Below, piece after piece: positions 6,867 through 46,126 of a DNA stretch of 64,000 nucleotides (position 1 is the first letter of the stretch; every line of letters begins with the position of its first letter). The notes below the pieces were generated by a model. That model was not told the origin of the DNA. It searched no databases and saw only the letters and a program-made list of their open reading frames with translations. The DNA comes from Hyalangium minutum (lineage in GTDB: Bacteria > Myxococcota > Myxococcia > Myxococcales > Myxococcaceae), in NCBI RefSeq assembly GCF_000737315.1, contig NZ_JMCB01000003.1:868001-932000 (forward strand). The letters run 5' to 3'. A program made the position numbers and the translations under genes.

Positions 6867-6868
6867 CG

Positions 6869-19145: not shown

Positions 19146-19164
19146 CGTGACTCCAGGCCGCAGT

Positions 19165-20434: not shown

Positions 20435-20448
20435 CGGACAGCGGCTCC

Positions 20449-21894: not shown

Positions 21895-21929
21895 GGGCAG
21901 CCTCCGGAGCATGGCTCCCGCGCCGGGAG

Positions 21930-23307: not shown

Positions 23308-23341
23308 GGCACGTCCATATCGGCCTGGGTATTTCCTGGCC

Positions 23342-24430: not shown

Positions 24431-24478
24431 GCCGGACGTGGCATCCTGCGGCAGCGAAGCAGTGCAAGGAGCGGCCCC

Positions 24479-25375
24479 ATGTCGACGGACCCGGAGTTGG
24501 AACTGGTGATGCTGGCCCGGAGCGCGGAGCTCCCCGGAGGGCTGCACGTGCGCCGGGCCATTCCACAGGCCCAGCGGCGGATGGTGGGGCCGTTCGTCTT
24601 CGTGGATCAGATGGGACCGGCGGAGTACCCGGCGGACCGGGAGGTGACGATCCTCGCCCACCCGCACATCGGGCTGTCGACGGTGACCTACCTCTTCGAG
24701 GGCGAGGGCGTGCACCGGGACAGCCTCGGGACGGAGCAGAAGATCCTCCCGGGTGAGGTGAACTGGATGACGGCGGGCCAGGGGATCGTCCACTCGGAGC
24801 GGACGCGGGCGGGCGGCTCGGGGCGGATGTTCGGCATCCAGACGTGGGTGGCGCTCCCGAAGCACCTGGAGGAGTGCGCGCCCACCTTCGAGCATTATGA
24901 CGCGAGCGCCGTGCCACTCTTGGAGGAAGGCGGCGTCACCACCCGGCTGATCGCGGGCTCGCTGTTCGGGGCCCGCTCCCAGGTGAGGACCTCCTCCCCG
25001 CTCTTCTACGCCGAGGTCCTGTTCGAGGCGGGGGCGGTGCTGCAGCTGCGCCCCGAGTACGACGAGCGGGCCGCCTTCGTGGTGGAGGGCGCGGTGACGC
25101 TGACCGAGACGACGCTGCGGGCCGGCGAGATCGCCTTCTTCCACCGGGGCACGGAGGTGCTGCTGCGCGCCGAGGAGCCCACCCGGCTGCTGCTGCTGGG
25201 AGGCGAGCCGCTGGAGGGCCCGCGCTACATCTCGTGGAACTTCGTCTCCAGCTCGAAGGATCGGCTCAAGCAGGCGTCCAGCGACTGGCGCCACCAGCGC
25301 TTCGCGCGCATCCCCGGGGAGACGCAGTACATCCCGCTCCCCGAGGACGGCGATACACCGGTCAACTATCCCTGA
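24479..25375 (+). CDS. Pirin family protein
   Basis: VGPFVFVDQMG, HPHIGLSTVTYLFEG, WMTAGQGIVHSE and GIQTWVALP. Confidence 0.93.
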   Translation: MSTDPELELVMLARSAELPGGLHVRRAIPQAQRRMVGPFVFVDQMGPAEYPADREVTILAHPHIGLSTVTYLFEGEGVHRDSLGTEQKILPGEVNWMTAGQGIVHSERTRAGGSGRMFGIQTWVALPKHLEECAPTFEHYDASAVPLLEEGGVTTRLIAGSLFGARSQVRTSSPLFYAEVLFEAGAVLQLRPEYDERAAFVVEGAVTLTETTLRAGEIAFFHRGTEVLLRAEEPTRLLLLGGEPLEGPRYISWNFVSSSKDRLKQASSDWRHQRFARIPGETQYIPLPEDGDTPVNYP

Positions 25376-28300
25376 CGGCGCCCACGGAGAGCCCATGCCA
25401 GAGCCATCAAGGCCCATGAAAGAGGAAGGACAGGGGCGGTAGCGCAACTCCAGCCGTAATGGCTCATGGGGATGATGAATGCGTACTCAGCGGAGGGTTG
25501 GCTGGTATTGCTGGCTTCATCCGTGGCAGTGGCCACGACCAGGTGGCGGCCTCCTGCCAGCGCCGTGTCGACGTTGACACTCCAGTTTCCCGCCTCATCC
25601 GCTGGGACCGTCCCCACCCAAAGACCATCCAGCCACACATTCACAGTGCTCTTTGCCTCCGCCGTCCCCCCCAGAGTGGGCTTCGGGGTGTTGACGATGG
25701 AGCTTGGCAATCCCACCTCGGGTGCATCGGGCTTCTGGGTGTCGACGGTAAAGGGATGAGCCGTAGAGAGAGCACTGATATTGCCCACGGCATCGGTGGC
25801 CATCGCTGTAACCAGATGCGGTCCATCGAACAACTCCGCCCCCGGAGTGAAGCGCCAACTCCCCGTGGCATCTGTCATGGCGATGCCTGCATCCGTCTCA
25901 TCCAGCCGCACCGTCACCATGCTTCCCACCTCCGCTCTCCCTTCAATGAGAGGTATCCGTGTGTTGACGAGTGCTCCAGGCGCCGTCACTTCGGGCGCCT
26001 CGGGTGCCAGAGAGTCGATCGTGAAGGTACGGACCCTGGTAGAACTGACATTGTTGGCTTTATCGGTGGCAGTCACCTCGGCGACGTGGAGTCCCTCGAT
26101 CAACGGAGTCTCAAGGGTCACGCTCCAGAATCCCGTCGCGTCTGCCTGAATGGTCCAAACCTCTTGCCCATCCATCCGTACCGCCACGGTGCTATTGGCC
26201 TCCGCCGTGCCAGCAATGGTGGGCTTCAGGGTATTGATAAGCTCCCCAGGAGAACTCACCTCAGGTGCGTCTGGCCGCACGGTGTCGACTGTGACGAGGT
26301 GGGTTTTGGAGAGGCTGACATTGCCCACTTCGTCCGTGGCGGTGAGCTCGGTTTGGAGGTGTCCATCGGAGAGAGCCGTGGAAGGAATGAAGCTCCAGGC
26401 TCCATCTTCATCGGTGCTGGCTGTCCCCAGCACGGTGCTTCCCAGCCACAACGTCACCGTGCTCCGGGCCTCCGCCAGCCCCCTGTAAGTCGGCCGGTTG
26501 TCGTTGATGGTGGAGCCGTTGTTCGGTGTGAGCACCACTGGGGACGATGGCGGCACGGTGTCCACGATGAACGTGTAGGCGATGGATTCGGCGCTGGTAT
26601 TGCCCCCGGCATCCGTCGCTTGCACCTTCACCGTGTGGACGCCGTCCGCCAGCACCGCTGGCTGCGTGCAGTTCCACTCTCCCGAGGCATTGGCCACCCG
26701 AGTCCCCACGGCCACGCCATCCACCATCACCTTGACGGTGCCGCCCGCCTCCACGGTCCCTTGATAGATCGGCCGATTGTCTTTGATGGTGGAGCCGTTG
26801 GCCGGCTCGAGCACCTGCGGGGCTCCGGGTGGCTGCGTGTCCACTGTGAACGTGTAGGGCATGGACGCAGCGCTGGTATTGCCCGCGGAATCTGTCGCGT
26901 ACGCTTTCACCGTGTGCTCCCCCTCCGACAGCACCGTGGGCTGCGTGAAGTTCCATATCCCCGAGCCATTGACCCCCGCCGTCCCCAACACTGTGGTCCC
27001 CAGCCACAACGTCACCGTGCTCCGGGCCTCCGCCAGCCCCCTGTAAGTCGGCCGGTTGTCGTTGATGGTGGAGCCGTTGTTCGGTGTGAGCACCACTGGG
27101 GACGATGGCGGCACGGTGTCCACGATGAACGTGTAGGCGATGGATTCGGCGCTGGTATTGCCCCCGGCATCCGTCGCTTGCACCTTCACCGTGTGGACGC
27201 CGTCCGCCAGCGCCGCTGGCTGCGTGCAACTCCACTCTCCCGAAGCATTGGCCACCCGATTCCCCACGGCCACGCCATCCACCATCACCCTGACGGTGCT
27301 GCCCGCCTCCACGGTCCCTTGATAGATCGGCCGATTGTCTTTGATGGTGGAGCCGTTGGCCGGCTCGAGCACCTGCGGGGCTCCGGGTGGCTGCGTGTCC
27401 ACTGTGAATGCATAGGGAGTGGACTCGAAGCTGATGGTGCCCGCGGAGTCTGTCGCGTACGCTTTCACCGTGTGAATCCCATCCGTCAGCACCGTGGGCT
27501 GCGTGAAATTCCACTCTCCAGAGCCATTGACCCCCGCAGTCCCTCGGGCTGTGCCATCCACCACCACCGTGACGGTGCTGCCCAATTCTGCCGTGCCGCT
27601 GTAGAACGGACGGTTGTTGTTGAGCGTGGAGCCGTTGATGGGCGTGAGCACTGTCGGGCTCGTTGGGTCAATCACCTCCATGCTGGAGAGGGCGCCCCCG
27701 GAGCCAAAGCCCCCGGTCACCAACACCTTGCCAGAGTCCAATAACGTCGCCGTGTGGTATACGCGTGCGGCGCTCAAAGGGTTCGTGGTGCTCCAGTTCC
27801 CTGTGGTCGGGTCGTACAGTTCCATGCGGTCGAAGTAGGCACTGGAGCCCTCGCCACCGATGACCAGGACCTTGCCGGAGGCCAACAACGTCGCTGTGTG
27901 ATCAGCACGCGCCAAGGACAGGGAGTTCGTAGTGCTCCGGTTCCCCGTGTCGGGATCGTACAGCTCTGCATGGGCGAGATAGCCGCTGGTGCCATGGCCC
28001 CCAATGACCAGCACCCTGCCGGAGGCCAACAACGTCGCCGTGTGGGCCATGCGAGCCTTGGCCATCTCACCCGCGCTGCTCCACGTTCCCGAGGCGGGGT
28101 CGTACAGTTCCATGCTGGTGAGAACACCCCTGGAGCTATCGCCCCCGATGACCAGCACCTTGCCGGAGGACAGCAGCGTCGCCGTGTGAGTATCACGGGC
28201 CGTCATCATTCTTCCCGTGGTGCTCCAGGTCCCCGTGTCGGGGTCATACAGCTCCGCAGTGGCCAGATAGCCGCTGGGACCGTACCCCCCGGTGACTAGA

Positions 28301-29823
28301 ACCTTGCCGGAGGCCAACAGCGTTGCCGTGTGAGCATCACGGGCCATGGTCATGGAGCCTGTGGTGCTCCACGTTCCTGTGGCTGGATCGTATAACTCCG
28401 AGGTGGCTAGAGAGCCGGCCACGCTAAATCCCCCAGTGACCAGCACCTTGCCGGAGGCCAACAGCGTCGCCCTGTGGGTGCTACGGGCTGTGCTCATGGA
28501 GCCCATGGGGCTCCAGGCCCCCATGGCCGGGTCATACACCTCCGTGCTGGCGATATTGCCACTGGGGCCAAAACCCCCGGTGACCAGCACCTTGCCGGAG
28601 GCCAACAGCGTCGCCTCGTGGTACTGGCGGCCCGCGATCAGAGAGCCCTTGGTGCTCCAGGTTCCCATGGCCGGGTCGTACACCTCCGCGCTGGAGAGAT
28701 ATCCGCTGAGACCATAGCCAGCCATGACCAACACCTTGCCGGAGGGCAGCAGCGTCGCCGTGTGGCGATAACGAGCCGTTCCCATGACGCCCGTCGTGCT
28801 CCAGGTACCCGTGGCCGGATCGTACACCTCCGCTCTGGAAAGCGGGCCCGCCTGGCCATAGCCGCCGGCAACCAGCACCTTGCCGGAGGCCAACACCTCT
28901 GCTGTGTGGGTTTCACGGGCTGTAGCCATAACGCCCGCAGTGGTCCACCCCCCTGTGGCCGGGTCGTACACCTCCGCGCTGGAGAGGAGGCCCCCAGGAC
29001 CATAGCCACCGGTCACCAAGACCTTGCCAGAGGCCAACACCACTGCTGTATGGGCTTTACGGGCCATCGCCATGACGCCTGCGGTGCGCCAAGTCCCCGT
29101 GGCTGGGTCGTACACCTCCGCGCCAGCGAGCGAGCCGTCTAGATCTTCGCCTCCGGTGACCAGCACCTTGCCGGAGGCCAACAGCGTCGCCGTGTGGGCG
29201 ACACGGACTGTGGCCATGGAGCCCGTGGAGTTCCAAGTCCCCGTGGCCGGGTCGTACAGCTCTGCGCTGGCAAGGGGACCCTCTGAGTCTTCGCCTCCGG
29301 TCACCAGCACTTGGCCGGAGGCCAACAGCGTCGCCGTGGGGGCCTCGCGGGCCATGGCCATGGAACCCGTGGAGCTCCAAATCCCCGTGGCCGGGTCGTA
29401 CACCTCCGCGCTGGCAAGGGAGCCATTGGGGCCGTACCCTCCGGTGACCAACACCTTGCCGGAGTGCAACAACGTTGCTGTGTGGGTCCTGCGAGCTGTG
29501 GCCATGGAACCCGTGGAGATCCAAGTCCCCATGGCCGGATCGTACAACTCCGCGCTGGCAAGAGAACCGCTTCGGGCACGCCCCCCGGTGACCAACACCT
29601 TGCCGGAAGACAATAACGTCGCCGTGTGAAAATCGCGGGCCGTAGCCAGAGTGCTCACGGCACGACTGCCCCCCGCGAGAGCCTGAAGGGCCTGGGTCTC
29701 GAGTCTTTGGGGATGCTGCTCTTGACCCTCACTCTCCACCTGGCCGCACGCCAAACACAGCAGTGCGGAACTGATGATCAGCCTGACGATCACTCTCAAC
29801 TTGATTCTGAGGGCGGATGGCAT
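25366..29823 (-). CDS. Large surface protein: 14 Kelch repeats, 8 bacterial Ig-like domains, MYXO-CTERM-like tail
   Basis: 48-aa repeats HTATLLASGKVLVTGG...YDPATGTW counted 14 times; Ig-like units ...ATDxAGNxS; N-terminal LCLAC lipobox; C-terminal YGWSCATAP..WALMALAWALRGRR. Confidence 0.88.
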   Translation of the reverse strand: MPSALRIKLRVIVRLIISSALLCLACGQVESEGQEQHPQRLETQALQALAGGSRAVSTLATARDFHTATLLSSGKVLVTGGRARSGSLASAELYDPAMGTWISTGSMATARRTHTATLLHSGKVLVTGGYGPNGSLASAEVYDPATGIWSSTGSMAMAREAPTATLLASGQVLVTGGEDSEGPLASAELYDPATGTWNSTGSMATVRVAHTATLLASGKVLVTGGEDLDGSLAGAEVYDPATGTWRTAGVMAMARKAHTAVVLASGKVLVTGGYGPGGLLSSAEVYDPATGGWTTAGVMATARETHTAEVLASGKVLVAGGYGQAGPLSRAEVYDPATGTWSTTGVMGTARYRHTATLLPSGKVLVMAGYGLSGYLSSAEVYDPAMGTWSTKGSLIAGRQYHEATLLASGKVLVTGGFGPSGNIASTEVYDPAMGAWSPMGSMSTARSTHRATLLASGKVLVTGGFSVAGSLATSELYDPATGTWSTTGSMTMARDAHTATLLASGKVLVTGGYGPSGYLATAELYDPDTGTWSTTGRMMTARDTHTATLLSSGKVLVIGGDSSRGVLTSMELYDPASGTWSSAGEMAKARMAHTATLLASGRVLVIGGHGTSGYLAHAELYDPDTGNRSTTNSLSLARADHTATLLASGKVLVIGGEGSSAYFDRMELYDPTTGNWSTTNPLSAARVYHTATLLDSGKVLVTGGFGSGGALSSMEVIDPTSPTVLTPINGSTLNNNRPFYSGTAELGSTVTVVVDGTARGTAGVNGSGEWNFTQPTVLTDGIHTVKAYATDSAGTISFESTPYAFTVDTQPPGAPQVLEPANGSTIKDNRPIYQGTVEAGSTVRVMVDGVAVGNRVANASGEWSCTQPAALADGVHTVKVQATDAGGNTSAESIAYTFIVDTVPPSSPVVLTPNNGSTINDNRPTYRGLAEARSTVTLWLGTTVLGTAGVNGSGIWNFTQPTVLSEGEHTVKAYATDSAGNTSAASMPYTFTVDTQPPGAPQVLEPANGSTIKDNRPIYQGTVEAGGTVKVMVDGVAVGTRVANASGEWNCTQPAVLADGVHTVKVQATDAGGNTSAESIAYTFIVDTVPPSSPVVLTPNNGSTINDNRPTYRGLAEARSTVTLWLGSTVLGTASTDEDGAWSFIPSTALSDGHLQTELTATDEVGNVSLSKTHLVTVDTVRPDAPEVSSPGELINTLKPTIAGTAEANSTVAVRMDGQEVWTIQADATGFWSVTLETPLIEGLHVAEVTATDKANNVSSTRVRTFTIDSLAPEAPEVTAPGALVNTRIPLIEGRAEVGSMVTVRLDETDAGIAMTDATGSWRFTPGAELFDGPHLVTAMATDAVGNISALSTAHPFTVDTQKPDAPEVGLPSSIVNTPKPTLGGTAEAKSTVNVWLDGLWVGTVPADEAGNWSVNVDTALAGGRHLVVATATDEASNTSQPSAEYAFIIPMSHYGWSCATAPVLPLSWALMALAWALRGRRQG
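26441..27556. repeat. 558-bp intragenic tandem duplication (two Ig-like domains)
   Basis: 26441-26850 is nearly identical to 26999-27408, and the 558-bp register continues with more mismatches. Confidence 0.9.
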
Positions 29824-30094
29824 GCCTGCCTCCTTACCTATTGCTTCTCTTCTCTCCCCAAGAGCGTTTGCAGCTCTTGAGAACAGCACGGGCTGGGAGT
29901 GCTACTGCACCCGGTGAAGCCCGAAAGGGTGAGCCCCAAAAGAGAAGCGTGGCGGAAGAGCGCCGCTGAACGGCGCGTACGCCAACAGGCAATGCAAGTA
30001 ACGGACCCAGGAGCGAATACTCCTGGGGGAGGCACCGGCGAGGGTTAGGAATGAGAGCAATGCCTGGCCCCGGAATGGCCCAGACTTACGTCAA

Positions 30095-30128
30095 CTGACG
30101 CGTCAACGCTTGCATCTGACGCGTCAAC
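30095..30128. promoter_or_regulatory. Two copies of CTGACGCGTCAAC (palindromic core TGACGCGTCA), 21 bp apart
   Basis: Seen at 30095-30107 and 30116-30128 in the intergenic region upstream of the Kelch gene. Confidence 0.55.
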
Positions 30129-30199
30129 ATGGGGAGACGGCCTGAGCGACAGTTCTCGCCCAGGCCATCCGCCTGCTCGTCTGCTCAGCAAGGAGCAGC

Positions 30200-30706
30200 T
30201 CACCGGCCGCCGAGGAAGTCCGCCTTGCCCACGTCCACACCGTTGTGACGCAGAATGGCGTAGGCCGTGGAGAGGTGGAAATAGAAGTTGGGCAGCGCGA
30301 AGTGGAGCAGATATTCCTGGCCCTTGAAGTGAAGCTCACCTGCCCTCGTCTTGAGGGTGACGGAGCGCTCCTCGCTGCCATCGATCTGCGCCGCAGTCAC
30401 TGTCTTCAGAAAGGCGAGGGTCTTCTCGATGCGCTCCTTCAGCTCGGGGAACGTGGACTCGGTGTCTGCGAAGCTGGGCGCCTCGATCCCCGACAGACGG
30501 GCCGCACATCCCTTTGCAGAATCGGTCGCGGTCTGAATTTGGAAGGAGAAGGGAAGCATGTCGGGCGCCAAGCGGTCCCGGATCAGCACCGCCGGATCAA
30601 TCTTCTTCGCCTCGGCATGCGCCGCAGCCTTGTCGAGGATCTTCGAGAGATTGCCCAGCATGCGGATGAAAACGGGGATCGACGCCTGGTACATGGACAG
30701 GGACAT
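30200..30706 (-). CDS. DUF1993 family protein
   Basis: RLAPDMLPFSFQIQ, YLLHFALPNFYFH and AYAILRHNGVDVGKADFLG. Confidence 0.9.
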   Translation of the reverse strand: MSLSMYQASIPVFIRMLGNLSKILDKAAAHAEAKKIDPAVLIRDRLAPDMLPFSFQIQTATDSAKGCAARLSGIEAPSFADTESTFPELKERIEKTLAFLKTVTAAQIDGSEERSVTLKTRAGELHFKGQEYLLHFALPNFYFHLSTAYAILRHNGVDVGKADFLGGR

Positions 30707-30748
30707 GGTGCTGGCTCCAAAAAATGGGGGGGAAAAGCGGGCCGGAAT

Positions 30749-30997
30749 CTAACGGGAGCGCCGCACGCGGACCACCTTACCGCGCCGATCATCCACCGCC
30801 AGCTCCACCCACCGGCCCCGAGGCATCCCAAAGCGCACCAGCCACACCATGACATCCCGAACGGGAGAGGGCTGCTCCGGCTCTCCCTCGCCCAGTTCGA
30901 TGTACTGCAGCTCGGCCGACTCCACCCGGGCGTCCGGGGGTACTTCCTTCTCCTCTCGGGCGCTCTCGGCGATGGCCACGGCCTGCTCCCGCATCAT
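30749..30997 (-). CDS. Small PepSY-like protein (82 aa)
   Basis: MMREQAVAIAE...VESAEL...VWLVRF...ELAVDDRRGKVV; start overlaps the upstream stop (ATGATGA). Confidence 0.7.
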   Translation of the reverse strand: MMREQAVAIAESAREEKEVPPDARVESAELQYIELGEGEPEQPSPVRDVMVWLVRFGMPRGRWVELAVDDRRGKVVRVRRSR

Positions 30998-31476
30998 CGC
31001 GCGCCCTCCTCCACGGGCAGGATGGAGATGACGGCGCGCCGCGCGGGGTTGATGCACACGCGCAGCCCGTCCGAGGGCTCCTTCCCTTCGAAGCGAAGCT
31101 CCAGGCTCCCCTTCTCTCCCTGGCGGGACTCCACCAGCGTCAGCCCGGGCCGCAGCAGCCCGCTCGTGCGAGCGATGGCCAGCGCCTCCGCGTCCGTCAG
31201 CGGCTCCCAGCGGCACTTCTCCCACTTGTCGTGGTCCACGTAGCCCACGACCCGATCGTCCGCGTCGAGCACCACCTCGAACTGGCCATACCGCCGCCAG
31301 AGCACCATCGAGCGATCCGCCACGTAGCGCAGCTCGATAGGATCCCACGTCAGCGCCGCATCGTCCGGTACGGGGATGGGCTCAGCGACGAAGTCCCCGT
31401 TCATGTGCTCCTGGGCGAACTTCAAGCAGTCTTCGATCGCCTTCTTCTGCAGCGTGTCGAGATCGAACAAGGCCAT
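30994..31476 (-). CDS. Hypothetical protein with PepSY-like C-terminal half; candidate immunity
   Basis: Starts 15 bp after the vgrG stop; LTDAEALAIA...LRVCINPARRAVISI. Confidence 0.7.
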   Translation of the reverse strand: MALFDLDTLQKKAIEDCLKFAQEHMNGDFVAEPIPVPDDAALTWDPIELRYVADRSMVLWRRYGQFEVVLDADDRVVGYVDHDKWEKCRWEPLTDAEALAIARTSGLLRPGLTLVESRQGEKGSLELRFEGKEPSDGLRVCINPARRAVISILPVEEGAR

Positions 31477-31491: not shown

Positions 31492-34400
31492 CTACTTCAA
31501 CATCGAGACGACGCTGGTGACGAACCCGGCGATGGCCCGCCCCAGCGCAGTGAAGGGCTGGAGGAACGGATGATCGATGGACCCGCCGCCCTCGCCGAAC
31601 AGCACCGGGCGCATGCTGTGATAGTAGGGCGCGCCCGTGTCGTAGAAGACCGCTGGAATCTTCGCGGGGTTGAAGTGATACGAGTCCCTCCACTTCGTAT
31701 AGAAGTTGCGCGCCATGGCCCGCGCGTCGTTGTCGGGGATGTAGCAGCGGAAGGCCAGGTAGTTGCGAGTGCCCCGGTTGACGAAGGCATTGCCCAGGCT
31801 CCGCTCCCAGCCCGCCACGCACGTGTCCACGTAGACGAGGTAGCGCGGCACGCTCGGCACAGCGGTCTTGTTGCGGACGTCAGCCTCTCCGAAGGTGTTG
31901 CCGGGCTGGTTGCTTGACGCCACGGCAACGATGACACTGCGCCAGTTCCCACCAGGCTGCGAGTGCGGCGGGTTGTTGTTCTTCGGATCCTGCAGGCTGG
32001 CACCCGTACCCGGATCCTGCACGTCGCCGTGGCTGGCGTGGTGATAGCTGTAAGTGTTGCGCAGCAACGAACCCCAGTTCGCTACCGGCACCGTGGCCCC
32101 ACTGAGCGCAAGCGTCCCCGCCTTGTGGTGCGCCTTGGCGCGGATCAAACCGGCGATCTCGTTCATCTCCGCGCCCGTGGTGAGCCCACCGCCCGGGCCT
32201 GTATCCGCCACCGAGTCACTGACCACCATGTGCCAGTACTCGACCTGGAGCGTCTTCGCCTTGTCCTTGCCCAGATCATACGGGCTGGAGCCCGTGAGCC
32301 CCTTGTGGGACAGCTTCACGCGGAAGAAGAAGTGCGGGCAGTCGTAGGGATCCCACGGCAGGTGCTTGGCCTCGAAGGTCCACACCGGCGGCTGTCCCGT
32401 CTTCTTGTCCACCACCTTGTTGCCCTGCACCACCAGATCCGTAAGCGCCCCCACTCGCGCGCCCGTGAGGCAGTGGTGGATGGAGATGAGCGCCCGGGCA
32501 CCCGCCGGGACGTTCTCCGTCTCCACCTGCGCGACGATCTTTGCGTCCGCGGGCACAGCGCCGCCCGGGGGCGCACCGCTGTTGTGGTTGGGCACGGCCT
32601 TGTTCTTGTCCCAGGTGAGGCTCTTGAGGACTGGAACTGGATCCTTCTTGGGCGCCTTCGGGGCCTTGCCCTTCTTGCCTTTGAGGCTCTTCTGCGAGCC
32701 CGCGGAGATCCTCTTGACCTCCGAGCCCTTGAACTTCAGCTGGCTCCCGTCGACGGTGATGGAGCTGCCCGTCCACTGGATGTTGCCGGACTGCTCGACG
32801 GTCAGCACCACCTTGCCGCCTACCGACACGGTGAGCTTGTCCGCCTTGAGCTCGATCTCCTGGGCCATCCACGCGAACCCGCCCGTGATGGCGTGGAGCG
32901 TGTCCCCCTTCACTGTCTCGGTGAGGTCCTTGCCGATCTCCACCTTGAGCTCTTCTGGGATCGCCGTTTTGAACTCGCCGAAGATCTTCGAAGAGCGATC
33001 GCCGTCGACCTTCTCCTCGCGGTCCAGCTGGACCACCTCGATGAACGAGCCGCCCACCTGCTCGGCCTTCAGTCCGATCACGGCCTCGTTGAACCCCAAC
33101 CCCACCGCCACCGAGTACGCCCCGCCCACCGTCAGCGCCTTGGCCGCCGCCACGTTCTCCATGGAGGCCATGGCCACATCGAGCTTCAGCACCTGGGCCA
33201 CCGTGATGCTCTGCGCGTTGGCCACGTCCTCGTGGTGATCCCCCGAGATGTCCGTGGTGCGGTTGCCCATCACCGTGAGCGACTGGTTGCCCTGGATCTT
33301 CCGGACGTCCTCCTGCTGCACCGCCAGGATCTGGTTGCCCTGCACGCTCTGCGTCCGGTTCCCCGCGACCGTCAGATCCTCGAAACCTCCGATGCGCTGG
33401 GTCTTGTCGTTCTCGGCCTGGATCTCCCAGTCCTTCTGGCCGTGCAGGGCAATGAACTCCGTCCCCGCCGCGTCCTCGAAGCGCAGCTCGTTGAAGCCTC
33501 CACCGCCCGGGCTGGAGCTGGAGCGCAGCGTGCTCTTCGTCTTCTCGTCTGGCAGCGGCACCGGCGGCGGGTTCTCGCCGTTGTAGACCGAGCCCACCAC
33601 CAGCGGACGATCCGGATCGCCCTCCAGGAACCGGACGATGACCTCCTGCCCGATGCGCGGCAGGTACAGCGCGCCCCACCCGGCCCCCGCCCACGCCTGG
33701 CTCACGCGGATCCAGCATGAGCTCCGGTCGTCGCCCGGCGCCTCGCGGTCCCAGTGGAAGCGGACCTTGATGCGGCCGTGCTCGTCGGTGTGGATCTCCT
33801 CGCCCGAGGGCCCCACGACGATCGCCGTCTGCGCTCCGGCAATCACAGGCGCCGGGGTGAGCCGAGGCGGACGGAAAGGCACGGCCGCCGGGAGCGCATG
33901 GAACCGGCTCCGGTAGGCGTGGTGCCCGCCCGAGTGTTCCACCGCGACCAACAGGTAGTCCCCCTCGAAGGCGGCATCCGGATGCTCCGTCAGCGTGAAG
34001 GTGCAGCCAGGCACCATGCGCACACTCGAGCTCTCGCCCTCGCAGCGCTCGGCATCCTGCCGGTGCTCCTCCAGCCGCACCTTCGACAGGTTCTTTCCAG
34101 CGCCCGGATCCTCGTACTTGCCCGGATAGTCGTAGACCTCCAGCTCCGTGCCGACGTTGGACGCCTCCTTGTTCGCCGTCAGATCCAGCGACGGGCGCAC
34201 GAAGTCGAAGTCCCGCAGCACCACCGCGCCCGGCTGCACGCGGGCCACGCGCTCCAGGCCCAGCACGTGCTCCTCGCTGACCTCGGTGCCCAGAGCCCCT
34301 CGGAACGGCAGGCGCGCCTCCCCCGGAATGGGCGTGTGCGCGCCCGTGCCATCTCCGAGCATCAGCGTGTGCGCGTCCTCGGTGTGCTCGAAGAAGAAGA

Positions 34401-34914
34401 AGATGCCCTCGGACTCGAGCAGCCGGGACACGAAGTCGAAGTCCGACTCGCGGTACTGCACGCAGAAGTCCCGGGGCGCGTAGCTGCCATCCAGGCTCCC
34501 GCCGTGCGAGAGCCCTGCCTCTTCGAGCACTTGCTGGACGATCTCCGGCACGCTCTTCTGCTGGAAGATGCGGCTGCGGCGCACGTGGCGGAGCTTCCAG
34601 AACTCGGGGACGAGCAGCGCCCGGTAGCGCATGAGCCCCTGCCGCTCGCCCAGCGACTCCACCCGGCCGATGATCCCGTGGACGAAGCGCGAGGCCCCAT
34701 TCACCACATCATGCAAGGCCAGCACGCCCTTCTGCCCGAGCATCTCCCGAGGCTGGATGGCCGCCTGCCCCACGGCCGCCAGCTCCACGGTGAAGGAGAA
34801 CGCGCGCGACAGCTCCTCCCGCCCGGAGAAGCCGAGCACGGTGAGCTCCTCGGAGGTGTAGGGCCCCGCGCGGAACTCGAAGGCGATGCGGCGGGTCTCT
34901 TGTCCTGACGGCAC
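31492..34914 (-). CDS. vgrG: Evolved VgrG with a ~400-aa C-terminal extension (caspase/CHAT-like)
   Basis: VgrG core (CVQYRESDFDFVSRLLE, HTDEHGRIKVRFHWDR, LPRIGQEV) with beta-helix repeats; extension carries YHHASHG and LVYVDTCVAG. Confidence 0.93.
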   Translation of the reverse strand: MPSGQETRRIAFEFRAGPYTSEELTVLGFSGREELSRAFSFTVELAAVGQAAIQPREMLGQKGVLALHDVVNGASRFVHGIIGRVESLGERQGLMRYRALLVPEFWKLRHVRRSRIFQQKSVPEIVQQVLEEAGLSHGGSLDGSYAPRDFCVQYRESDFDFVSRLLESEGIFFFFEHTEDAHTLMLGDGTGAHTPIPGEARLPFRGALGTEVSEEHVLGLERVARVQPGAVVLRDFDFVRPSLDLTANKEASNVGTELEVYDYPGKYEDPGAGKNLSKVRLEEHRQDAERCEGESSSVRMVPGCTFTLTEHPDAAFEGDYLLVAVEHSGGHHAYRSRFHALPAAVPFRPPRLTPAPVIAGAQTAIVVGPSGEEIHTDEHGRIKVRFHWDREAPGDDRSSCWIRVSQAWAGAGWGALYLPRIGQEVIVRFLEGDPDRPLVVGSVYNGENPPPVPLPDEKTKSTLRSSSSPGGGGFNELRFEDAAGTEFIALHGQKDWEIQAENDKTQRIGGFEDLTVAGNRTQSVQGNQILAVQQEDVRKIQGNQSLTVMGNRTTDISGDHHEDVANAQSITVAQVLKLDVAMASMENVAAAKALTVGGAYSVAVGLGFNEAVIGLKAEQVGGSFIEVVQLDREEKVDGDRSSKIFGEFKTAIPEELKVEIGKDLTETVKGDTLHAITGGFAWMAQEIELKADKLTVSVGGKVVLTVEQSGNIQWTGSSITVDGSQLKFKGSEVKRISAGSQKSLKGKKGKAPKAPKKDPVPVLKSLTWDKNKAVPNHNSGAPPGGAVPADAKIVAQVETENVPAGARALISIHHCLTGARVGALTDLVVQGNKVVDKKTGQPPVWTFEAKHLPWDPYDCPHFFFRVKLSHKGLTGSSPYDLGKDKAKTLQVEYWHMVVSDSVADTGPGGGLTTGAEMNEIAGLIRAKAHHKAGTLALSGATVPVANWGSLLRNTYSYHHASHGDVQDPGTGASLQDPKNNNPPHSQPGGNWRSVIVAVASSNQPGNTFGEADVRNKTAVPSVPRYLVYVDTCVAGWERSLGNAFVNRGTRNYLAFRCYIPDNDARAMARNFYTKWRDSYHFNPAKIPAVFYDTGAPYYHSMRPVLFGEGGGSIDHPFLQPFTALGRAIAGFVTSVVSMLK

Positions 34915-34972
34915 AGCTTCTCCCAGGGCAGCGCGACGCAGGCAGAGACGCTAGCATGAAGCCCCGCCTCGG

Positions 34973-37300
34973 ATGGACGGGACCCGAAGCAGGCATCTAT
35001 CGTCCTTGCCGAGCGCACAAGGGAGCATTCCGGTGAGACCAGCCAGTGTCCTGACCGCCAGCGAGCCTGAGTTCGAGTTCGCCGCAGGCCCCTTCACACA
35101 GGGAGAGCTCTCCGTCATCGAGTTCGAGGCCCGCGAGGGCCTGTCCACCCCGTACCGGGTGGAGCTCGTCTTCACCGCCGCATCCGACATGGTCGTCGAG
35201 GCCGCCGATCTGCTCGGCCAGCCCGCCGCCCTGGTGGTGCGCCAGGGGGACGACATCCGCTACCTGCACGGTCTCGTCTCCGAGCTGAGCCGATGGAACA
35301 TGGGAGGCGGGCCACAGCGCAACCGCTACCGCGCGGTGCTCGAGCCCCGGTTCCACCAGCTGCGCCATACCCGCCGCAGCCGAATCTTCCAGCAAAAGAG
35401 CATCCCCGAGATCATCCAGGCGGTGCTGGACGCGGGAAAGGTGAAGTACACCCTGGACCTCCAGGGCTCCTACTCGCCACGGGACTACTGCGTGCAGTAC
35501 CGCGAGTCCGACTTCGACTTCGTCTCGCGGCTGATGGAGGAGATGGGCATCTTCTATTTCTTCCGCCACGAACAGGGTGAGCACGAGCTGGTATTGGGGG
35601 ATTCCCCCAGTGTGCATACGCCCATCCTCGGCGAGCCGGCGCTGCCCTTCCGGGATCCGGCGGGCATGGCGGCGACGGAAGAGTGCGTCTACGACATGGC
35701 AGGGAAGCTGGAAGTGGTCCCCGGGGCAGTGGCGCTGCGGGACTTCGACTTCGTGCGGCCCTCGCTGGACATGACGGTGGACAGCCAGGACTCGAAGGGC
35801 GACACGGCGCTCGAGGTGTACGACTACCCGGGCAAATACGAGGATCCCGGCCCAGGTCAGGATGTGGCGAAGATCCGCCTGGAGGAGCTGCGGGCTCCCG
35901 GGCAGGTGGCGTGGGGCCAGTGCCAGAGCCGGCGGATGATGCCGGGACACAAGTTCGAGCTGACGGGCCACGCGGAGCCCGAGCTGAACCGCGAGTACCT
36001 GCTGCTATCGGTGATGCACGAGGGTTATCAACCTGAGGTGCTCCTCTTCGAGCAGTCGAACGGAAGGCTCACGGGGCGCAAGCCGTACCGCAGCACCTTC
36101 CAGTGCATGCCGTCCGAGGTCCCCTACCGCCCGCCTCGGCGGACATCGCGTCCGGTGATTCCCGGGCCGCAGACGGCGATCGTCGTGGGGCCCTCGGGCG
36201 AGGAGATCCACACCGACGAGCACGGCCGGGTGAAGGTGAAGTTCCACTGGGACCGCGAGGCGCCGGGCGACGACCGGAGCTCGTGCTGGATCCGCGTGAG
36301 TCAGGCGTGGGCGGGCCCGGGCTGGGGTGCGCTGTACCTGCCGCGCATCGGGCAGGAGGTGGTGGTGGACTTCCTGGAGGGCGATCCGGATCGGCCCCTC
36401 ATCACCGGGCGCGTGTACAACGGGCACAACCCTCCCCCCACGGATCTGCCCGGGAAGCGGACGCAGAGCACGCTGCGCTCGGACTCCAGCCCCTCCAGTG
36501 GCGGCTTCAATGAGCTGCGCTTCGAGGACGCGGCCGGTGAGGAGCAGATCTACCTCCATGCGCAGAAGGACATGGAGATCGGCATCGAGAACGACAAGAA
36601 CCAGTCGATCGGCGGGAACGAGTCGCTCACGGTGGCGAAGGATCGGCGCCGGGAGATCAGCGGCAACCAGTCGTTGAAGGTGCAGGGAAACGACGACTCG
36701 ACGGTGGGCGGCAACCAGACGGTGGAGGTGCGCTCGAACCGGACGACGACGGTGGCGGGCAACCACACGGAGACGGTGGGCGGCGCGCAGAACATCGAGG
36801 TGGGCGGGACTCACACGCTGTCGGTGGCGCTGGCCTCGGCGGAGACGATCGGCCTGGCCAAGGCGCTCAATGTGGGCGGGGCCTACGCCATCAGCGTGGG
36901 CGCGGCGATGAACGTGGCGGTGGCGGGGGTGAAGGCCGAGGAGGTGGGCGGCTCCAAGACCGAGCTGGTGGGCTCGCAGAAGACGGAGAAGATCGCCGGC
37001 TCGAAGACGCTCACGGTGGGCAAGGAGCTGACGGAGACGGTGGGCGAGTCGCGCACGCTCGAGGTGGGCAAGGACATGACGCTCACGGTGGGCGGCATGC
37101 TCCAGCAAGTGACGAAGAAGAACCACAAGCTGTCGGCCAAGGAGATCAGCCTGGTGGCCGAGGACACCTTCACCATCAAGGTGGGCTCGGCCTCGCTCAC
37201 GTTCAAGAAGAGCGGGGACATCGTCATCAAGGGCGCCAAGGTCGAGGTGACCGCCAGCGGCGACGTCATCATCAAGGGCAGCAAGATCGCCGACAACTGA
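34973..37300 (+). CDS. vgrG: VgrG (no effector extension)
   Basis: Full VgrG core ending in the short DUF2345-like tail IKGAKVEVTASGDVIIKGSKIADN; the start may be GTG near 35032. Confidence 0.95.
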   Translation: MDGTRSRHLSSLPSAQGSIPVRPASVLTASEPEFEFAAGPFTQGELSVIEFEAREGLSTPYRVELVFTAASDMVVEAADLLGQPAALVVRQGDDIRYLHGLVSELSRWNMGGGPQRNRYRAVLEPRFHQLRHTRRSRIFQQKSIPEIIQAVLDAGKVKYTLDLQGSYSPRDYCVQYRESDFDFVSRLMEEMGIFYFFRHEQGEHELVLGDSPSVHTPILGEPALPFRDPAGMAATEECVYDMAGKLEVVPGAVALRDFDFVRPSLDMTVDSQDSKGDTALEVYDYPGKYEDPGPGQDVAKIRLEELRAPGQVAWGQCQSRRMMPGHKFELTGHAEPELNREYLLLSVMHEGYQPEVLLFEQSNGRLTGRKPYRSTFQCMPSEVPYRPPRRTSRPVIPGPQTAIVVGPSGEEIHTDEHGRVKVKFHWDREAPGDDRSSCWIRVSQAWAGPGWGALYLPRIGQEVVVDFLEGDPDRPLITGRVYNGHNPPPTDLPGKRTQSTLRSDSSPSSGGFNELRFEDAAGEEQIYLHAQKDMEIGIENDKNQSIGGNESLTVAKDRRREISGNQSLKVQGNDDSTVGGNQTVEVRSNRTTTVAGNHTETVGGAQNIEVGGTHTLSVALASAETIGLAKALNVGGAYAISVGAAMNVAVAGVKAEEVGGSKTELVGSQKTEKIAGSKTLTVGKELTETVGESRTLEVGKDMTLTVGGMLQQVTKKNHKLSAKEISLVAEDTFTIKVGSASLTFKKSGDIVIKGAKVEVTASGDVIIKGSKIADN

Positions 37301-37318: not shown

Positions 37319-38689
37319 TCAGCGGTTCAGGAGCCGATCAAAGGAGCGGGAGAGGAGATCCGAGCGCAGGCCCGCGGCCTTCTGGGCCTGAGCCCGCTGC
37401 ACGTGCGTCCACGTGCGGGATTCAATCTGGCATGAGCCCTGACTGCGGATGGCCAGTTCCCATGCCAGCACGGAGCGGCGGCGCAGCGGCTCACCCTCCA
37501 GCGCGGCGCGGAGGAGGTCGGCCGAGAGGGGCTGGCCCCGGAGGTAGCGGCCCGAGGGCTCGAAGCGCCTGCGGGCCTCGCCCCACCAGCGATCCACCCG
37601 GTCCACGCGGACCTTGCCCGGGAGCACCTCGGGCCCGGGGAGCAGCTCCGCCACCGGGGCCTTGGGCGCCTCTTGCTCCTCTTCCTCCAGGAGCTCCTCT
37701 TCGAAGTCCTCCTCCCCCTCCTCTTCCTCCTCGATGAAGGGCGCCGCGAGCGGCAGGCCGGTGATGGCCGCGAAGGACTCGGCAGCGAGCCGATCGCCCA
37801 CCGCCTGAAGGTTCTCGAAGGCCAGCTCCGCCGCCGTGAGCCGCCCGCTGAAACCGAGCGCCCAGAGCGCCTCGTCACGCAACGCCGGATCCTTCAACGC
37901 GGCCCCAAGCGCCTCCAGGTCCGCCGCCTCCCCGCCCAGCGCCAGTGCGAGCAAGGCAATCCGAGGCACCTCCCCGCCCGCCTCCAGCAGCTTGCGGCAC
38001 CGCGTCCAGGCCTGACGGCTGCCCAGCACGAGCCCCGCCTCCAGCGCCGCGTCGCGCACCAGGGGCTCGCTGTCCCCGAGTCCCAAGCGGACCAGCTCTT
38101 CGCCAAGTGGCCGGGAGACAAAGCGGGCGTTGCGGACCGCCTCCACGCGCAGGGAGACGTCCTCGCCCAGCTTCACTTTCCCCAAGGCCTCGCTGGCATC
38201 CGCCTGACGGAAGCGCAGGGCAGCGAGCACCCCGGCCTGCTCATTGGGCGGAAGGGTGGGAACCAGCGCCAACAGGGCTGGGGTGAGCTCCTCGCGCGGG
38301 CTCAGCTCCACACCGCGCCGGATGCCGGAGATGAGTTCCTCAGCGCCCTCGGCGAGCCACTCAAGCACCGTCTTCTGCCAGTCCACGTCCTCACCGCCGA
38401 GCAGCGCCAGGGACGCCACGCTGATGGCGCTCACCTCCTCACCCTGGATGGCGGGAATCAAGAGCCGCTCGGCCACCGGCCGGCCGCCGAGCACGAGCGC
38501 GTCGATGTGGGCCAGCAGGCGCTGCTCCTCGCGCTGAGCGAGCTCGCCCAGCACGTAGTCCGGCGCCCACAGCGCGTGCTCCCATTGAGCCCAGAGGAAG
38601 GTGGCCTCTTCGAGGTGGACTTCCAGCACGTGCCAGGGCACGGGAGGACGGCGGTACGCGGGGGGTGATGGAGGCTTCGCCACGGTCAC
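37319..38689 (-). CDS. TIGR02270-family T6SS-associated protein
   Basis: HLEEATFLW...EQRLLAHIDAL, helical repeats, ALWALGFSG and GRYLRGQP. Confidence 0.8.
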   Translation of the reverse strand: MTVAKPPSPPAYRRPPVPWHVLEVHLEEATFLWAQWEHALWAPDYVLGELAQREEQRLLAHIDALVLGGRPVAERLLIPAIQGEEVSAISVASLALLGGEDVDWQKTVLEWLAEGAEELISGIRRGVELSPREELTPALLALVPTLPPNEQAGVLAALRFRQADASEALGKVKLGEDVSLRVEAVRNARFVSRPLGEELVRLGLGDSEPLVRDAALEAGLVLGSRQAWTRCRKLLEAGGEVPRIALLALALGGEAADLEALGAALKDPALRDEALWALGFSGRLTAAELAFENLQAVGDRLAAESFAAITGLPLAAPFIEEEEEGEEDFEEELLEEEEQEAPKAPVAELLPGPEVLPGKVRVDRVDRWWGEARRRFEPSGRYLRGQPLSADLLRAALEGEPLRRRSVLAWELAIRSQGSCQIESRTWTHVQRAQAQKAAGLRSDLLSRSFDRLLNR

Positions 38690-40034: not shown

Positions 40035-41171
40035 ATGATGGGATGGGTGAAGACCATAGGGCTGGCGTCCTCGCTGGGCCCGTTGATCCCGGCGTGCGCG
40101 GCGTTCCGCGCGGGCGTCTCCCGGCCCTCCGCAGCTCCGGACGCCGAGGTCTTCTTCCAGGGCGACGAGGAGCCCGCCACCGTGGCCGTCCATGTGCTCC
40201 CAGCCGCCACGTTTGGCTTCTCCGGAGTGGGCCGGCTGATCGCCCTGCTCACCGAGGCACTCGCGGACCTCGCGACGCGGGCGGACCTGAGCGCGCTGGA
40301 TGCACAGGCGGGGCTCTACGTCGCGCTGCCTGATCCCGAAGCGCGCGGCTTCACCCCCAGCAAGGAGCCCGAGGACGAGAACGCGGACACCGTCGAGGAG
40401 CGCGTGGCAGCGCTCGGAGCGCGCGTGGTGGAGGGAACCTTCGCGGCGCTGCGACACCCATGGCGAGGCCCTCCCGCGCGCCTCTTCCACGGAGGCAACG
40501 CGGCGTTCGGCATGGCCCTGGCGGCCGCGGCAGAGGATCTGAAGAACCGCCGGGTGAGCACCGCCCTGGTGTGCGCCGTGGACAGCCTGGCCTCACCCGA
40601 GACCGTGCGCTTCCTCAACGACGAAGGGCTGCTCAAGACCGAGGACCACCCCACGGGCCTCATCCCCGGCGAGGCCGCCGTGGCCCTCCTCTTGAGCCCC
40701 ACCTCCGCGGCCCGAGCAGAGGCCCAGGGCACGCCGGTCTTCCTCCGAAGCGTGGCGCTGGACACGGATCCGCACCCGGTCGGGGCGGATCGTCCCACCG
40801 ATGCTCAGCCGCTCGCGGGCTGCCTCCTCACCGCGCTGGGGCCTCTCTCGCCCCAGGCCCGCGTGCCCCTGCTCATCTCCGACCACGACGGCCAGCACTG
40901 GCGCGCGTACGAGTGGGGCTTGCTCCAACTCCAGCTCGCCAGCCGCGAGCGCTCCCTGACGGATGCTCCCGCGTGGCTGCCCGCCCTGAGCTTTGGCCAC
41001 ACGGGAGTGGCCTCGGGAGGGCTCGGCGCCGCCGTGGCCTTCCGGGCCTTCCAGCGAGGCTACGCCCCTGCTCCTTCTATTCTCGTGCTCTCGTCCTCGG
41101 ACACGGGCGAGCGCGCAGCCCTCCACTTCTCCTCCGAGGAGCCCTCGGCTCCCGGCCGTTCACGGCGGTAA
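40035..41171 (+). CDS. Ketoacyl-synthase-like T6SS effector adaptor (PRK06147-type)
   Basis: ALVCAVDSL, GLIPGEAAVALLL, SDHDGQHWRAYEWG and SFGHTGVASG; context with DUF2169, DUF4150 and TIGR02270. Confidence 0.8.
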   Translation: MMGWVKTIGLASSLGPLIPACAAFRAGVSRPSAAPDAEVFFQGDEEPATVAVHVLPAATFGFSGVGRLIALLTEALADLATRADLSALDAQAGLYVALPDPEARGFTPSKEPEDENADTVEERVAALGARVVEGTFAALRHPWRGPPARLFHGGNAAFGMALAAAAEDLKNRRVSTALVCAVDSLASPETVRFLNDEGLLKTEDHPTGLIPGEAAVALLLSPTSAARAEAQGTPVFLRSVALDTDPHPVGADRPTDAQPLAGCLLTALGPLSPQARVPLLISDHDGQHWRAYEWGLLQLQLASRERSLTDAPAWLPALSFGHTGVASGGLGAAVAFRAFQRGYAPAPSILVLSSSDTGERAALHFSSEEPSAPGRSRR

Positions 41172-41176
41172 TCCCC

Positions 41177-42031
41177 ATGCCTCCAGATGTCGTCGAGAAC
41201 ACCGCGTACTCCCAGAAGATCCACGACAGCTATCACGCGAGCCTGGATCGGAAGTACGCGGCCGATAAGGCCAAGAAGAAGAAGGCGAAGGCCAAGGCGA
41301 AGGCCAAGGGCCTGCCGCACGCGAGCACGGACGATCCGCTCAAGGGCGTGCTGGGCAAGGGCGACAAGTACGCCCAGCGGGCGCACGACTACCTGCTGAC
41401 GAACGGCGGGCGGAACAAGGTGTACCAGGACCTCTCGCACCACCACGTGAAGCGCATCAACCGGAAGAAGCTGGAGCACTTCAAGTTCCCGGGCGGCCCG
41501 GTGGAGAACTTCAACCCCTCGGCCAAGTACAAGGGCAAGAAGGCCGGACAGCGCTTCCCCTATGTCTGGGAGGCCCACCACATGCTGCCGGGCTCGGCCT
41601 TCTACTTCGAGCTCAACGGCACACTCTGCTTCACAGCGGCGCAGCGCCAGATCATCCTCAAGTCCGACTACAACATCAACCACGGGCACAACATGATCGA
41701 CTTGCCGGATCAGGCCTGGGCTGTTCCTGTCCACCGGTTGATCCAGCACCCGGGAGACCATCCGGAATACACCGCCCGGGTGATGAAGGCCCTCAGCAAG
41801 CTCTCCAAGAAGCTTCAGGAGCTGGCCGACAAAGGGGCGAAGCATGAAAAGCTCAAAGAGAAGGTGTTCGAGCAGCTCCAAGACCTGGAGAACCAGTGCT
41901 GGGAGTTCCTCATCGCGCTAGGACGCAGGAGCGTGAATGCGGTGCTGGCCGGCAAGGTGCTCGTGGACGTGAACGTCCGCTACGAAACCAAGGACGGCAA
42001 GACCAAGTTCAAGTGGGGCGCGCTGTACTGA
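41177..42031 (+). CDS. AHH-domain (HNH-like) nuclease toxin
   Basis: WEAHHMLP, YNINHGHNMIDLP and HPGDHPEYTARV; followed by Imm11. Confidence 0.85.
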   Translation: MPPDVVENTAYSQKIHDSYHASLDRKYAADKAKKKKAKAKAKAKGLPHASTDDPLKGVLGKGDKYAQRAHDYLLTNGGRNKVYQDLSHHHVKRINRKKLEHFKFPGGPVENFNPSAKYKGKKAGQRFPYVWEAHHMLPGSAFYFELNGTLCFTAAQRQIILKSDYNINHGHNMIDLPDQAWAVPVHRLIQHPGDHPEYTARVMKALSKLSKKLQELADKGAKHEKLKEKVFEQLQDLENQCWEFLIALGRRSVNAVLAGKVLVDVNVRYETKDGKTKFKWGALY

Positions 42032-42053
42032 CTGATCGGGAGCAGGTGGGCAC

Positions 42054-44486: not shown

Positions 44487-44516
44487 GCCCGTGCCTTCCC
44501 GGCCCTCGCACTGGGG

Positions 44517-44981: not shown

Positions 44982-45023
44982 CTCGGACTCTCTGGGCCCC
45001 ACGCGGCCCCGTGGCCCTTCATT

Positions 45024-46091: not shown

Positions 46092-46126
46092 GGGCCTCTT
46101 TCTACCAAGGACCGGACGCTCTTGGG

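Follow-up and report, generated by a model that had tools for sequence, protein, structure and literature searches.

The 64-kb window of Hyalangium minutum DNA analysed here (contig NZ_JMCB01000003.1, positions 868,001 to 932,000) carries, at window positions 31492..34914 on the minus strand, an evolved vgrG gene, in which a VgrG spike belonging to a type VI secretion system (T6SS) is followed by a C-terminal toxin module. Four independent lines of fold and sequence analysis support the assignment of the protease in this module to a divergent branch of the CHAT/clan CD superfamily. The protein is probably a T6SS-delivered effector with a CHAT-like protease toxin, against which the producing cell would be protected by the products of three small partner genes, A, B and C, and perhaps of a fourth, D.

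The VgrG protein and its predicted C-terminal protease domain

The gene is a single open reading frame (ORF) of 1140 codons plus stop. A first-pass annotation of this DNA had called the product a VgrG, and profile matches above the curated cut-offs make that identity unambiguous over residues 14-572: TIGR03361 scored 619 bits against a cut-off of 186, TIGR01646 scored 458 bits, and the Pfam domains Phage_GPD, Phage_base_V and Gp5_trimer_C scored 317, 56 and 119 bits. The complete VgrG core, with its gp27-like hub, OB domain and gp5-like beta-helix, was placed at residues ~1-735 (32710..34914), the portion between the last profile match and a Lys-rich linker being read from the sequence. GC content at third codon positions (GC3) is 0.86-0.93 across the gene, the same as in the neighbouring T6SS genes, which indicates that the coding region is genuine and native to the genome. 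Recent horizontal acquisition of the toxin region was considered and found no support, since its GC and GC3 equal those of the T6SS core genes. Within the 64-kb window there are no further copies of the toxin domain.

The toxin module was studied using the last 415 residues of the protein as a query, for which adding 725 to a query number gives the full-protein number. An AlphaFold2 (AF2) model of this query, built on an alignment of its homologues, had a mean predicted local distance difference test score (pLDDT) of 90.3 and a predicted template modelling score (pTM) of 0.86. It begins with a disordered Lys/Pro-rich linker (1-30, pLDDT 43-66), followed by an all-beta segment (~37-175, pLDDT above 95), an alpha/beta segment (~180-390) and a final helix (391-414). 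In the full protein, and on the minus strand throughout, these parts correspond to a linker at residues ~736-761 (32632..32709; sequence KGKKGKAPKAPKKDP), a beta-sandwich domain at residues ~762-900 (32215..32631), the divergent CHAT-type (clan CD) cysteine protease domain at residues ~901-1115 (31570..32214), assigned from Foldseek and hhalign matches and from the conservation of H-G and C, and an amphipathic helix at residues ~1116-1140 (31495..31569), assigned from the model and from the tail hydropathy of all homologues. The beta-sandwich is conserved across the family members of alignment A1, with W43 and PWDPWDKPFFYF as consensus motifs.

The ORF contains NTYSYHHASHGDVQ and RYLVYVDTCVAGWERSLGNAFVNRGTRNYLAFRCYIPDNDARAMARNFYTKW, and with them all three strings on which the first-pass annotation had built its proposal of a caspase-like protease, and the codons and spacing it gave for the catalytic residues are exact on translation. 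Counted from the start of the ORF, residue 962 is the His of YSYHHASHG (codon 32031..32029), and residue 1032, 70 positions further on, is the Cys of LVYVDTCVAG (codon 31821..31819). The extent it had assigned, 31492-32260, does not hold a whole number of codons and under-covers the domain; the module begins upstream of that range, with the beta-sandwich from ~32631 and the protease from ~32214.

A search of 5.8 billion proteins with the 415-residue query found 64 homologues, the closest of which, from Hyalangium versicolor, is 89% identical. In query numbering, H237, G238 and C307 are at least 90% conserved in these 64 proteins and invariant in the trimmed alignment, and the H-G and C are also at least 90% conserved in 45 more distant relatives. 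The motifs are therefore not a product of chance, and the proposed dyad is kept in homologues, as the first-pass annotation had expected of it. The second His of the motif, H233, varies among homologues (I, Q, V, M), which identifies the His of S-H-G as the catalytic one.

The model predicts a clan CD (caspase-haemoglobinase) alpha/beta fold for the C-terminal domain, with the His-Gly and the Cys after neighbouring strands: DSSP places His237 after strand 231-235 and Cys307 after strand 301-305. When the model was compared with the PDB using Foldseek, clan CD structures came out on top, in agreement with the fold that had been proposed. The best match was the activated SAVED-CHAT structure 8tl0 (E 4.9e-5, prob 1.0), and all matches at E<=1e-3 were SAVED-CHAT chains. 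Weaker matches were gingipain RgpB, separase, which is the eukaryotic relative of CHAT proteases, the Craspase TPR-CHAT protease, PorU and the CHAT-containing anti-sigma factor DdvA, all of them clan CD. The other matches were beta-sandwich proteins aligned on the N-terminal domain (weak glycoside hydrolase GH2, complement macroglobulin (MG) and carbohydrate-binding module (CBM) sandwiches), and no structure of the cysteine protease domain (CPD) or C80 type was among the 50 matches listed. Among the viral folds of BFVD, a single uncharacterised Myoviridae protein was matched (E 5e-4), the other matches being noise from beta-sandwiches.

Sequence profiles lead to the same superfamily. CHAT (PF12770) was the sole Pfam match of the last 415 residues, at 13.3 bits (E 0.056) over profile positions 212-251 of 289, just after the Cys, and no NCBIfam model matched them; nor does any Pfam or NCBIfam model cover the toxin family. 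A score under the Pfam CHAT cut-off points to a divergent branch. Scanned singly, 56 of 65 family members gave weak CHAT matches at E<=1 (best E 3.6e-5), and direct sequence searches of the PDB with the 415-residue domain and with the family profile gave no meaningful match. A profile of the protease domain alone (A2), searched against 1.84 billion representatives of 50%-identity clusters (~15 billion proteins), found 112 clusters at E<=1e-3, and the family is therefore small. Among its weakest matches was a bona fide CHAT protein, P0158 (98.7 bits on PF12770, profile positions 19-287/289), together with P0159, likewise above the Pfam CHAT cut-off (loci and database proteins are cited here by our own L and P numbers). 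By hhalign, profile A2 aligned with P0158 at 97.2% probability (E 4.5e-11, 145 columns) and with P0159 at 96.4%. The alignment to P0158 pairs YHHASHG with FHYAGHA and YVDTCVAG with ILSGCETA, placing SHG on GHA and DTC on SGC with the catalytic His and Cys aligned, and pairs NAFVNRGTRNYLAFRCYIPDNDARAMARNFYTKW with NAFLARGSRAVIATSRSVDDRSARAVISSFYDQW. The stretch ...RGT..AF....D..AR.MA..FY..W, which the first-pass annotation had read as the pattern that continues a CHAT domain after its Cys, is among the aligned regions.

Compared with CHAT proteases such as SAVED-CHAT (8tl0) and the Csx29 TPR-CHAT protease 'Craspase' (7y84), the window domain shares the caspase-haemoglobinase fold, a predicted His-Gly and Cys dyad at equivalent positions, and the helix-strand-helix signature ...aGa..vva....v.D..a..lm..fY that follows. 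It differs from them in its score under the Pfam gathering level, in the long insert of 70 residues between His and Cys, and in having its own beta-sandwich before the protease and a membrane-type helix after it. CHAT proteases are fused to sensor domains (SAVED, TPR), whereas members of the window family are fused to secretion carriers and show no sign of ligand-controlled activation.

Carriers, distribution and partner genes

The module of beta-sandwich, protease and C-terminal helix is the last part of the protein in every carrier context. Its carrier is VgrG in Myxococcota and in one Planctomycetales metagenome-assembled genome (MAG), and a Tox-PAAR-like domain in loci L001 and L019. In Tepidisphaera (L002) and Phycisphaerales it stands behind a short M-P-x-P-K-S-G leader and a charged disordered stretch, encoded by a gene right after vgrG. 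Other carriers are OmpA with PG_binding_1, or LysM, and stand-alone forms of the module also exist; among 65 homologues the fused domains were PG_binding_1 (15), OmpA (14), PG_binding_2 (6) and LysM (1). Polymorphic toxins are characterised by one C-terminal domain that recombines with several trafficking domains, and the occurrence of the module on different carriers marks it as a putative toxin of this type.

Several features of individual carriers were also recorded. About 17 of the 64 homologues, all stand-alone (P0007-P0029, P0051, P0059, P0061, P0064), open with M-[PN]-x-P-K-S-G and continue into a disordered leader rich in K, E and P. The Tepidisphaera gene of this type (L002, 8001..9329) lies directly after vgrG, and the VgrG-fused form has a similar Lys-rich linker; this leader or Lys-rich stretch may be a loading signal for the spike. 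In the subfamily fused to OmpA and PG_binding_1 (P0022, P0035-P0050; loci L003 and L029), a Cys...Cys insert, for example VRCRIDG..FPTVCPNDPSHPGRS, lies between the catalytic His and Cys and is possibly a small zinc or disulfide knuckle. The OmpA/PG-binding fusions have no signal peptide, and there are no T6SS genes near the module in the OmpA-type loci L003 and L029. Beside the OmpA-type member of L003 (4861..6823, minus strand), a 476-residue Peptidase_C2 (calpain-like) protein is preceded by a 166-residue PG_binding_1 protein, a pair that may be another protease toxin module. In Hyalangium versicolor (L005, ~9158) the longest toxin-containing ORF is only 695 residues long and the database protein P0001 has 609; similarity to the VgrG core extends upstream of this ORF, and a frameshift or an assembly error may have split the vgrG gene there.

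The C-terminal tail is a true transmembrane (TM) helix in about 10 of the 64 homologues (P0003, P0010, P0025, P0032, P0033, P0041, P0051, P0058, P0060 and P0062; mean Kyte-Doolittle hydropathy above 2.2 over 19 residues); most of the others, and the window protein with them, have an amphipathic helix instead. A tail that is either hydrophobic or amphipathic suggests that the protein works at a membrane.

A scan of one genome per species, covering 185,579 species, found 26 loci with the module. They are distributed over Myxococcota, Planctomycetota, Acidobacteriota, Bacteroidota, Fibrobacteria, Desulfuromonadaceae, Burkholderiales, Pseudomonadales and Gemmobacter. In 19 of 29 loci the module has T6SS marker genes no more than 10 kb away. 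One locus outside such a setting, L031 of Piscinibacter sakaiensis 201-F6 (CP182947.1, 8190..11769), is an orphan cassette made up of a 119-residue protein, a toxin of 477 residues, A, B, C and a 125-residue protein. Its surroundings are housekeeping genes, among them genes of phenylacetate catabolism, and no T6SS gene lies up to 10 kb away.

Downstream of the toxin gene and on the same strand, the partner genes follow in the order A (~155-165 residues), B (~81-99), C (~172-188) and often D (~160-180). Counted over 28 other non-duplicate loci from at least seven phyla, A follows the toxin gene in 27 and B follows A in 27; the A-B-C order is kept in nearly all, and our search missed just A in L027 and B in L028. 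In the window, A (160 residues; 30994..31476, minus strand) is the candidate immunity or inhibitor gene, with a weakly tandem-PepSY-like predicted fold, and the start codon of B (82 residues; 30749..30997, minus strand) overlaps the stop codon of A in ATGA. C (179 residues; 18519..19058, minus strand) was located by tblastn with the C proteins of L001-L003, and in L005-L008 it stands directly after B. D (162 residues; 18040..18528, minus strand) begins with a lipoprotein-type signal, ...LALVFSC. Roughly half of the loci have D (16 of 30, with duplicates counted, and the window), and the signal is found in the window and in most D-bearing loci, being absent from the D proteins of OmpA-type loci. 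No signal peptide was found in A, B or C. D was also considered as a TssJ-like lipoprotein and rejected; it has no Pfam match, and its profile matches in the PDB were consensus TPR designs without a passing stretch, judged to be compositional.

A and C are paralogous (hhalign 92.8%, E 3.9e-7). That B represents a single unit of A or C is no more than an impression from the sequence pattern, as hhalign was not significant (1.5% and 4.8%). A and B match no Pfam family at E<=10, and Pfam PepSY (PF03413) matched none of 10 representative partner proteins, 28 A members and 19 C members; DUF4901 (YcdB/YcdC repeat) was weakly matched by 5 of the 19 C members, with a best E of 1e-4. An AF2 model of A, computed on database homologues gathered by profile search (pLDDT 87.9), has an N-terminal helix and two helix-plus-antiparallel-sheet units. 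Its best Foldseek match in the PDB was the tandem-PepSY C-terminal domain of YpeB (5boi; E 7.7e-3, prob 0.99, TM 0.37), and the best PDB match of the A profile was the PepSY protein YpmB (2gu3; E 0.073). In its model units and best matches A bears a weak resemblance to PepSY domains, which occur in M4 peptidase propeptides, YpeB and YpmB, and 'PepSY-like' is a reasonable description, although weakly supported. PepSY propeptides are protease inhibitors. PepSY proteins are normally extracytoplasmic, whereas A to C, having no signal, would be cytoplasmic.

The first-pass annotation had paired the effector with PepSY-like immunity proteins encoded downstream. The two adjoining genes are indeed conserved partners in nearly every locus, but the PepSY match is weak, and the partner set comprises three to four genes (A, B, C and often D) rather than two. 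A, B and C stay with the toxin domain on any carrier, even in the orphan Piscinibacter cassette, which ties them to the toxin and not to the secretion machine. The simplest reading is that they provide immunity to the toxin or inhibit it.

Genomic setting in the window

The toxin vgrG heads the T6SS core cluster of the window, which lies downstream on the same strand (130..17609, minus strand; ClpV, TssF, TssC, TssA, TssM and TssK, identified with Pfam). C, D and tssK come right after B in the four closest relatives (L005-L008). The window differs by an insertion of 11.66 kb (19084..30747), delimited by blastn synteny with these four loci and absent from them, which occupies the spacer between B and C; both C and D are intact ORFs despite it. 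The insertion carries genes for a Tox-REase-5 toxin (20449..21912) with its Imm52 protein (19682..20452), an AraC regulator (22318..23451), an Old Yellow Enzyme (OYE)-type NADH:flavin oxidoreductase (23201..24430, plus strand), a 1507-residue Kelch/Ig-like protein (25366..29889) and a DUF1993 protein (30200..30706). No mobility gene was identified among them. The DUF1993 gene was considered as the third partner and rejected, as its product has no similarity to C and the real C lies beyond the insertion.

The remainder of the window forms an effector island encoding Tox-REase-5/Imm52, AHH/Imm11, Tox-PAAR-like, DUF6484 and DUF2169 proteins. A second vgrG (34973..37300, plus strand), identified with Pfam, is divergent from the first and encodes 775 residues without the toxin extension. 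Just 58 bp (34915..34972) separate the annotated starts of the two genes. The Phage_GPD match begins at residue 54 in the second VgrG and at residue 32 in the first, an offset from which the real start codon of one or both may lie further in. Convergent with the second vgrG is a gene for a 456-residue acidic protein with weak HEAT and zf-HC2 matches (37319..38689, minus strand), which is kept beside the module in L005-L008 and L015; L001 has a HEAT_2 protein. A second toxin-immunity pair is encoded at 40460..42677 (plus strand): a 523-residue protein with a C-terminal AHH (HNH/EndoVII) nuclease domain and, after it, an Imm11/Imm43-like protein. At 43977..46187 (minus strand) three genes in a row encode a DUF2169 adaptor, a stand-alone Tox-PAAR-like protein (161 residues) and a DUF6484 protein, and these three are also found with the CHAT-like toxin in L001, L007, L008, L015 and L019.

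Mode of action, alternative explanations and known systems

If the protein acts as we propose, firing of the T6SS would take the trimeric VgrG tip, and with it three copies of the protease, into a neighbouring bacterium. The C-terminal helix would probably anchor the protease at a membrane in the target cell, and the anchored enzyme would cut a single essential target protein or a small number of them. The co-inherited A, B and C, which are predicted to be cytoplasmic, weakly PepSY-like and likely protease inhibitors, would shield the producer and its kin, and so perhaps would the lipoprotein D. Proteolytic activity, toxicity, the inhibitory role of A to C and membrane association are all steps that we infer.

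Several observations weigh against this explanation. The window protein reaches 13.3 bits on Pfam CHAT, where the gathering threshold is 24. The PepSY-likeness of A is weak (Foldseek E 7.7e-3, TM 0.37) and comes with no PF03413 match. In 10 of the 29 loci, including that of Piscinibacter sakaiensis, no T6SS gene lies within 10 kb. In the window genome itself, C and D are separated from the A-B operon by 11.7 kb. Three to four conserved partners exceed the needs of a simple toxin-immunity pair, and some of them may be chaperones or adaptors. Finally, the compartment of action is ambiguous, as A to C lack a signal, D is a lipoprotein and 15-20 of the 65 homologues carry PG-binding domains. The PG-binding fusions and the lipoprotein D point to the periplasm and the signal-less A to C point to the cytoplasm, indications that conflict with each other.

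This conflict gives room for the main rival explanation, an enzyme that acts in the periplasm on the cell envelope. It could be either a protease or a transpeptidase of the clan CD type, with stem peptides or proteins associated with peptidoglycan as its substrates. In that case true immunity would come from D, and A to C would serve solely within the producer, as pre-export inhibitors or chaperones. The fusions of PG_binding_1, OmpA, PG_binding_2 and LysM to the module in homologues fit such an enzyme, as do the lipoprotein signal of D in the window and most D-bearing loci, the presence of PorU (a clan CD sortase-like transpeptidase) and gingipain among the fold matches, and the usually extracytoplasmic location of PepSY-type domains. 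However, D occurs in no more than roughly half of the loci and is without a signal peptide in those of OmpA type, the near-universal A, B and C have no export signal, and the PG-binding fusions have no signal peptide either; we regard such a periplasmic enzyme as improbable. A bolder version of the preferred explanation would accommodate both compartments. The module would then represent the first caspase/CHAT-clan interbacterial toxin family, delivered by the T6SS spike, tethered to the membrane through its C-terminal helix and cutting specific envelope or division proteins, with three co-evolving PepSY-like proteins, A to C, caging the protease while the lipoprotein D guards the periplasmic side; such a multi-protein immunity device would be without precedent, and would protect two compartments against one toxin. 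We put this forward tentatively, as a speculation that is unlikely to hold in full.

Another possibility is that the clan CD domain serves chiefly for self-processing, as a releasing or maturation peptidase comparable to the CPD of the MARTX and TcdB toxins or to the internal 'releasing' caspase domains of polymorphic toxins, and is not the toxic activity itself. The flexible Lys-rich linker ahead of the module would suit such a role, and most Tox-Caspase versions are releasing peptidases according to Zhang et al. 2012 (PMC3482391). Against it, stand-alone versions of the module occur, dedicated partner genes are conserved downstream, and no CPD/C80 structure was among the 50 Foldseek matches listed; moreover, the domain is C-terminal-most, whereas the CPD (C80) sits internally, upstream of effector domains. 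These points make a self-processing role quite improbable. Myxobacteria are predators, and an effector aimed at eukaryotic cells or prey (protists, fungi) was considered as well, with A to C as loading adaptors or chaperones that would, for example, cover the hydrophobic C-terminal helix. The true TM helix of about 10 homologues would need shielding, and A has a weak fold match to the EagT6 chaperone complex (6xrf). That match is not significant (E 0.32), and A-B-C follow the module on any carrier, also where there are no T6SS genes, which is the behaviour of immunity genes and not of carrier-specific adaptors; we consider this possibility very improbable.

Caspase-like toxins of this general kind are already known from prediction. 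Zhang, de Souza, Anantharaman, Iyer and Aravind (2012; PMC3482391) described 'Tox-Caspase' H/C domains, usually releasing peptidases and 'likely toxins' when C-terminal-most. The export routes they predicted included type II secretion (T2SS), T6SS, type VII secretion (T7SS) and Photorhabdus virulence cassettes (PVC), and the immunity families were Imm36 and Imm57 (PMC3482391). The window family resembles this class in being a caspase-like H/C peptidase, C-terminal-most in a polymorphic toxin, with T6SS as a predicted route and an adjacent candidate immunity gene. The module fits the Tox-Caspase definition, that is, an H/C domain at the extreme C terminus behind a trafficking domain and recombined onto different carriers. 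The class was defined only computationally (PMC3482391), and our comparison is with its published description; the window family may itself fall in the 2012 set. A, B and C match neither Imm36 nor Imm57. The first-pass annotation had held the effector and its immunity to be undescribed. The literature searched did not turn up this family or its partner genes, but C-terminal caspase-like toxins with T6SS export had been predicted in 2012. In that literature we also found no clan CD effector of a T6SS that had been characterised experimentally, no VgrG bearing a CHAT domain and no T6SS immunity of the PepSY type.

VgrG1-ACD and the VgrG3 muramidase of V. cholerae are evolved VgrGs with enzymatic C-terminal domains. 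P. aeruginosa VgrG2b is an evolved VgrG with a metallopeptidase domain (PMC6899460). Like these three proteins, the window protein combines a VgrG core and a covalently attached, putative effector domain with candidate immunity genes downstream; unlike them, it has the catalytic class of a clan CD cysteine protease, and the literature searched had no experimentally characterised VgrG with this fold. The nearest functional analogue is Cpe1, an interbacterial papain-like cysteine protease toxin that cleaves GyrB/ParE (PMC12136450). It acts by cutting essential cytoplasmic proteins at specific sites, and a cognate immunity protein blocks it. Cpe1 has a papain fold (clan CA) and a single immunity protein, whereas the window toxin is of clan CD and has several partner genes. 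To our knowledge, few proteolytic T6SS toxins have defined substrates.

CHAT proteases are of current interest as executioners in CRISPR-linked immunity and in immunity linked to cyclic-oligonucleotide-based antiphage signalling systems (CBASS). A secreted and presumably constitutively active CHAT relative, held in check by dedicated inhibitors, would offer a new toxic mechanism and probably new essential targets, and A to C would offer natural protein inhibitors of CHAT/clan CD proteases. With 112 clusters, 26 species genomes and a conserved gene module, the family is small and well delimited for experiment. For myxobacteria, it adds a candidate determinant of kin discrimination or antagonism at the head of a T6SS cluster.

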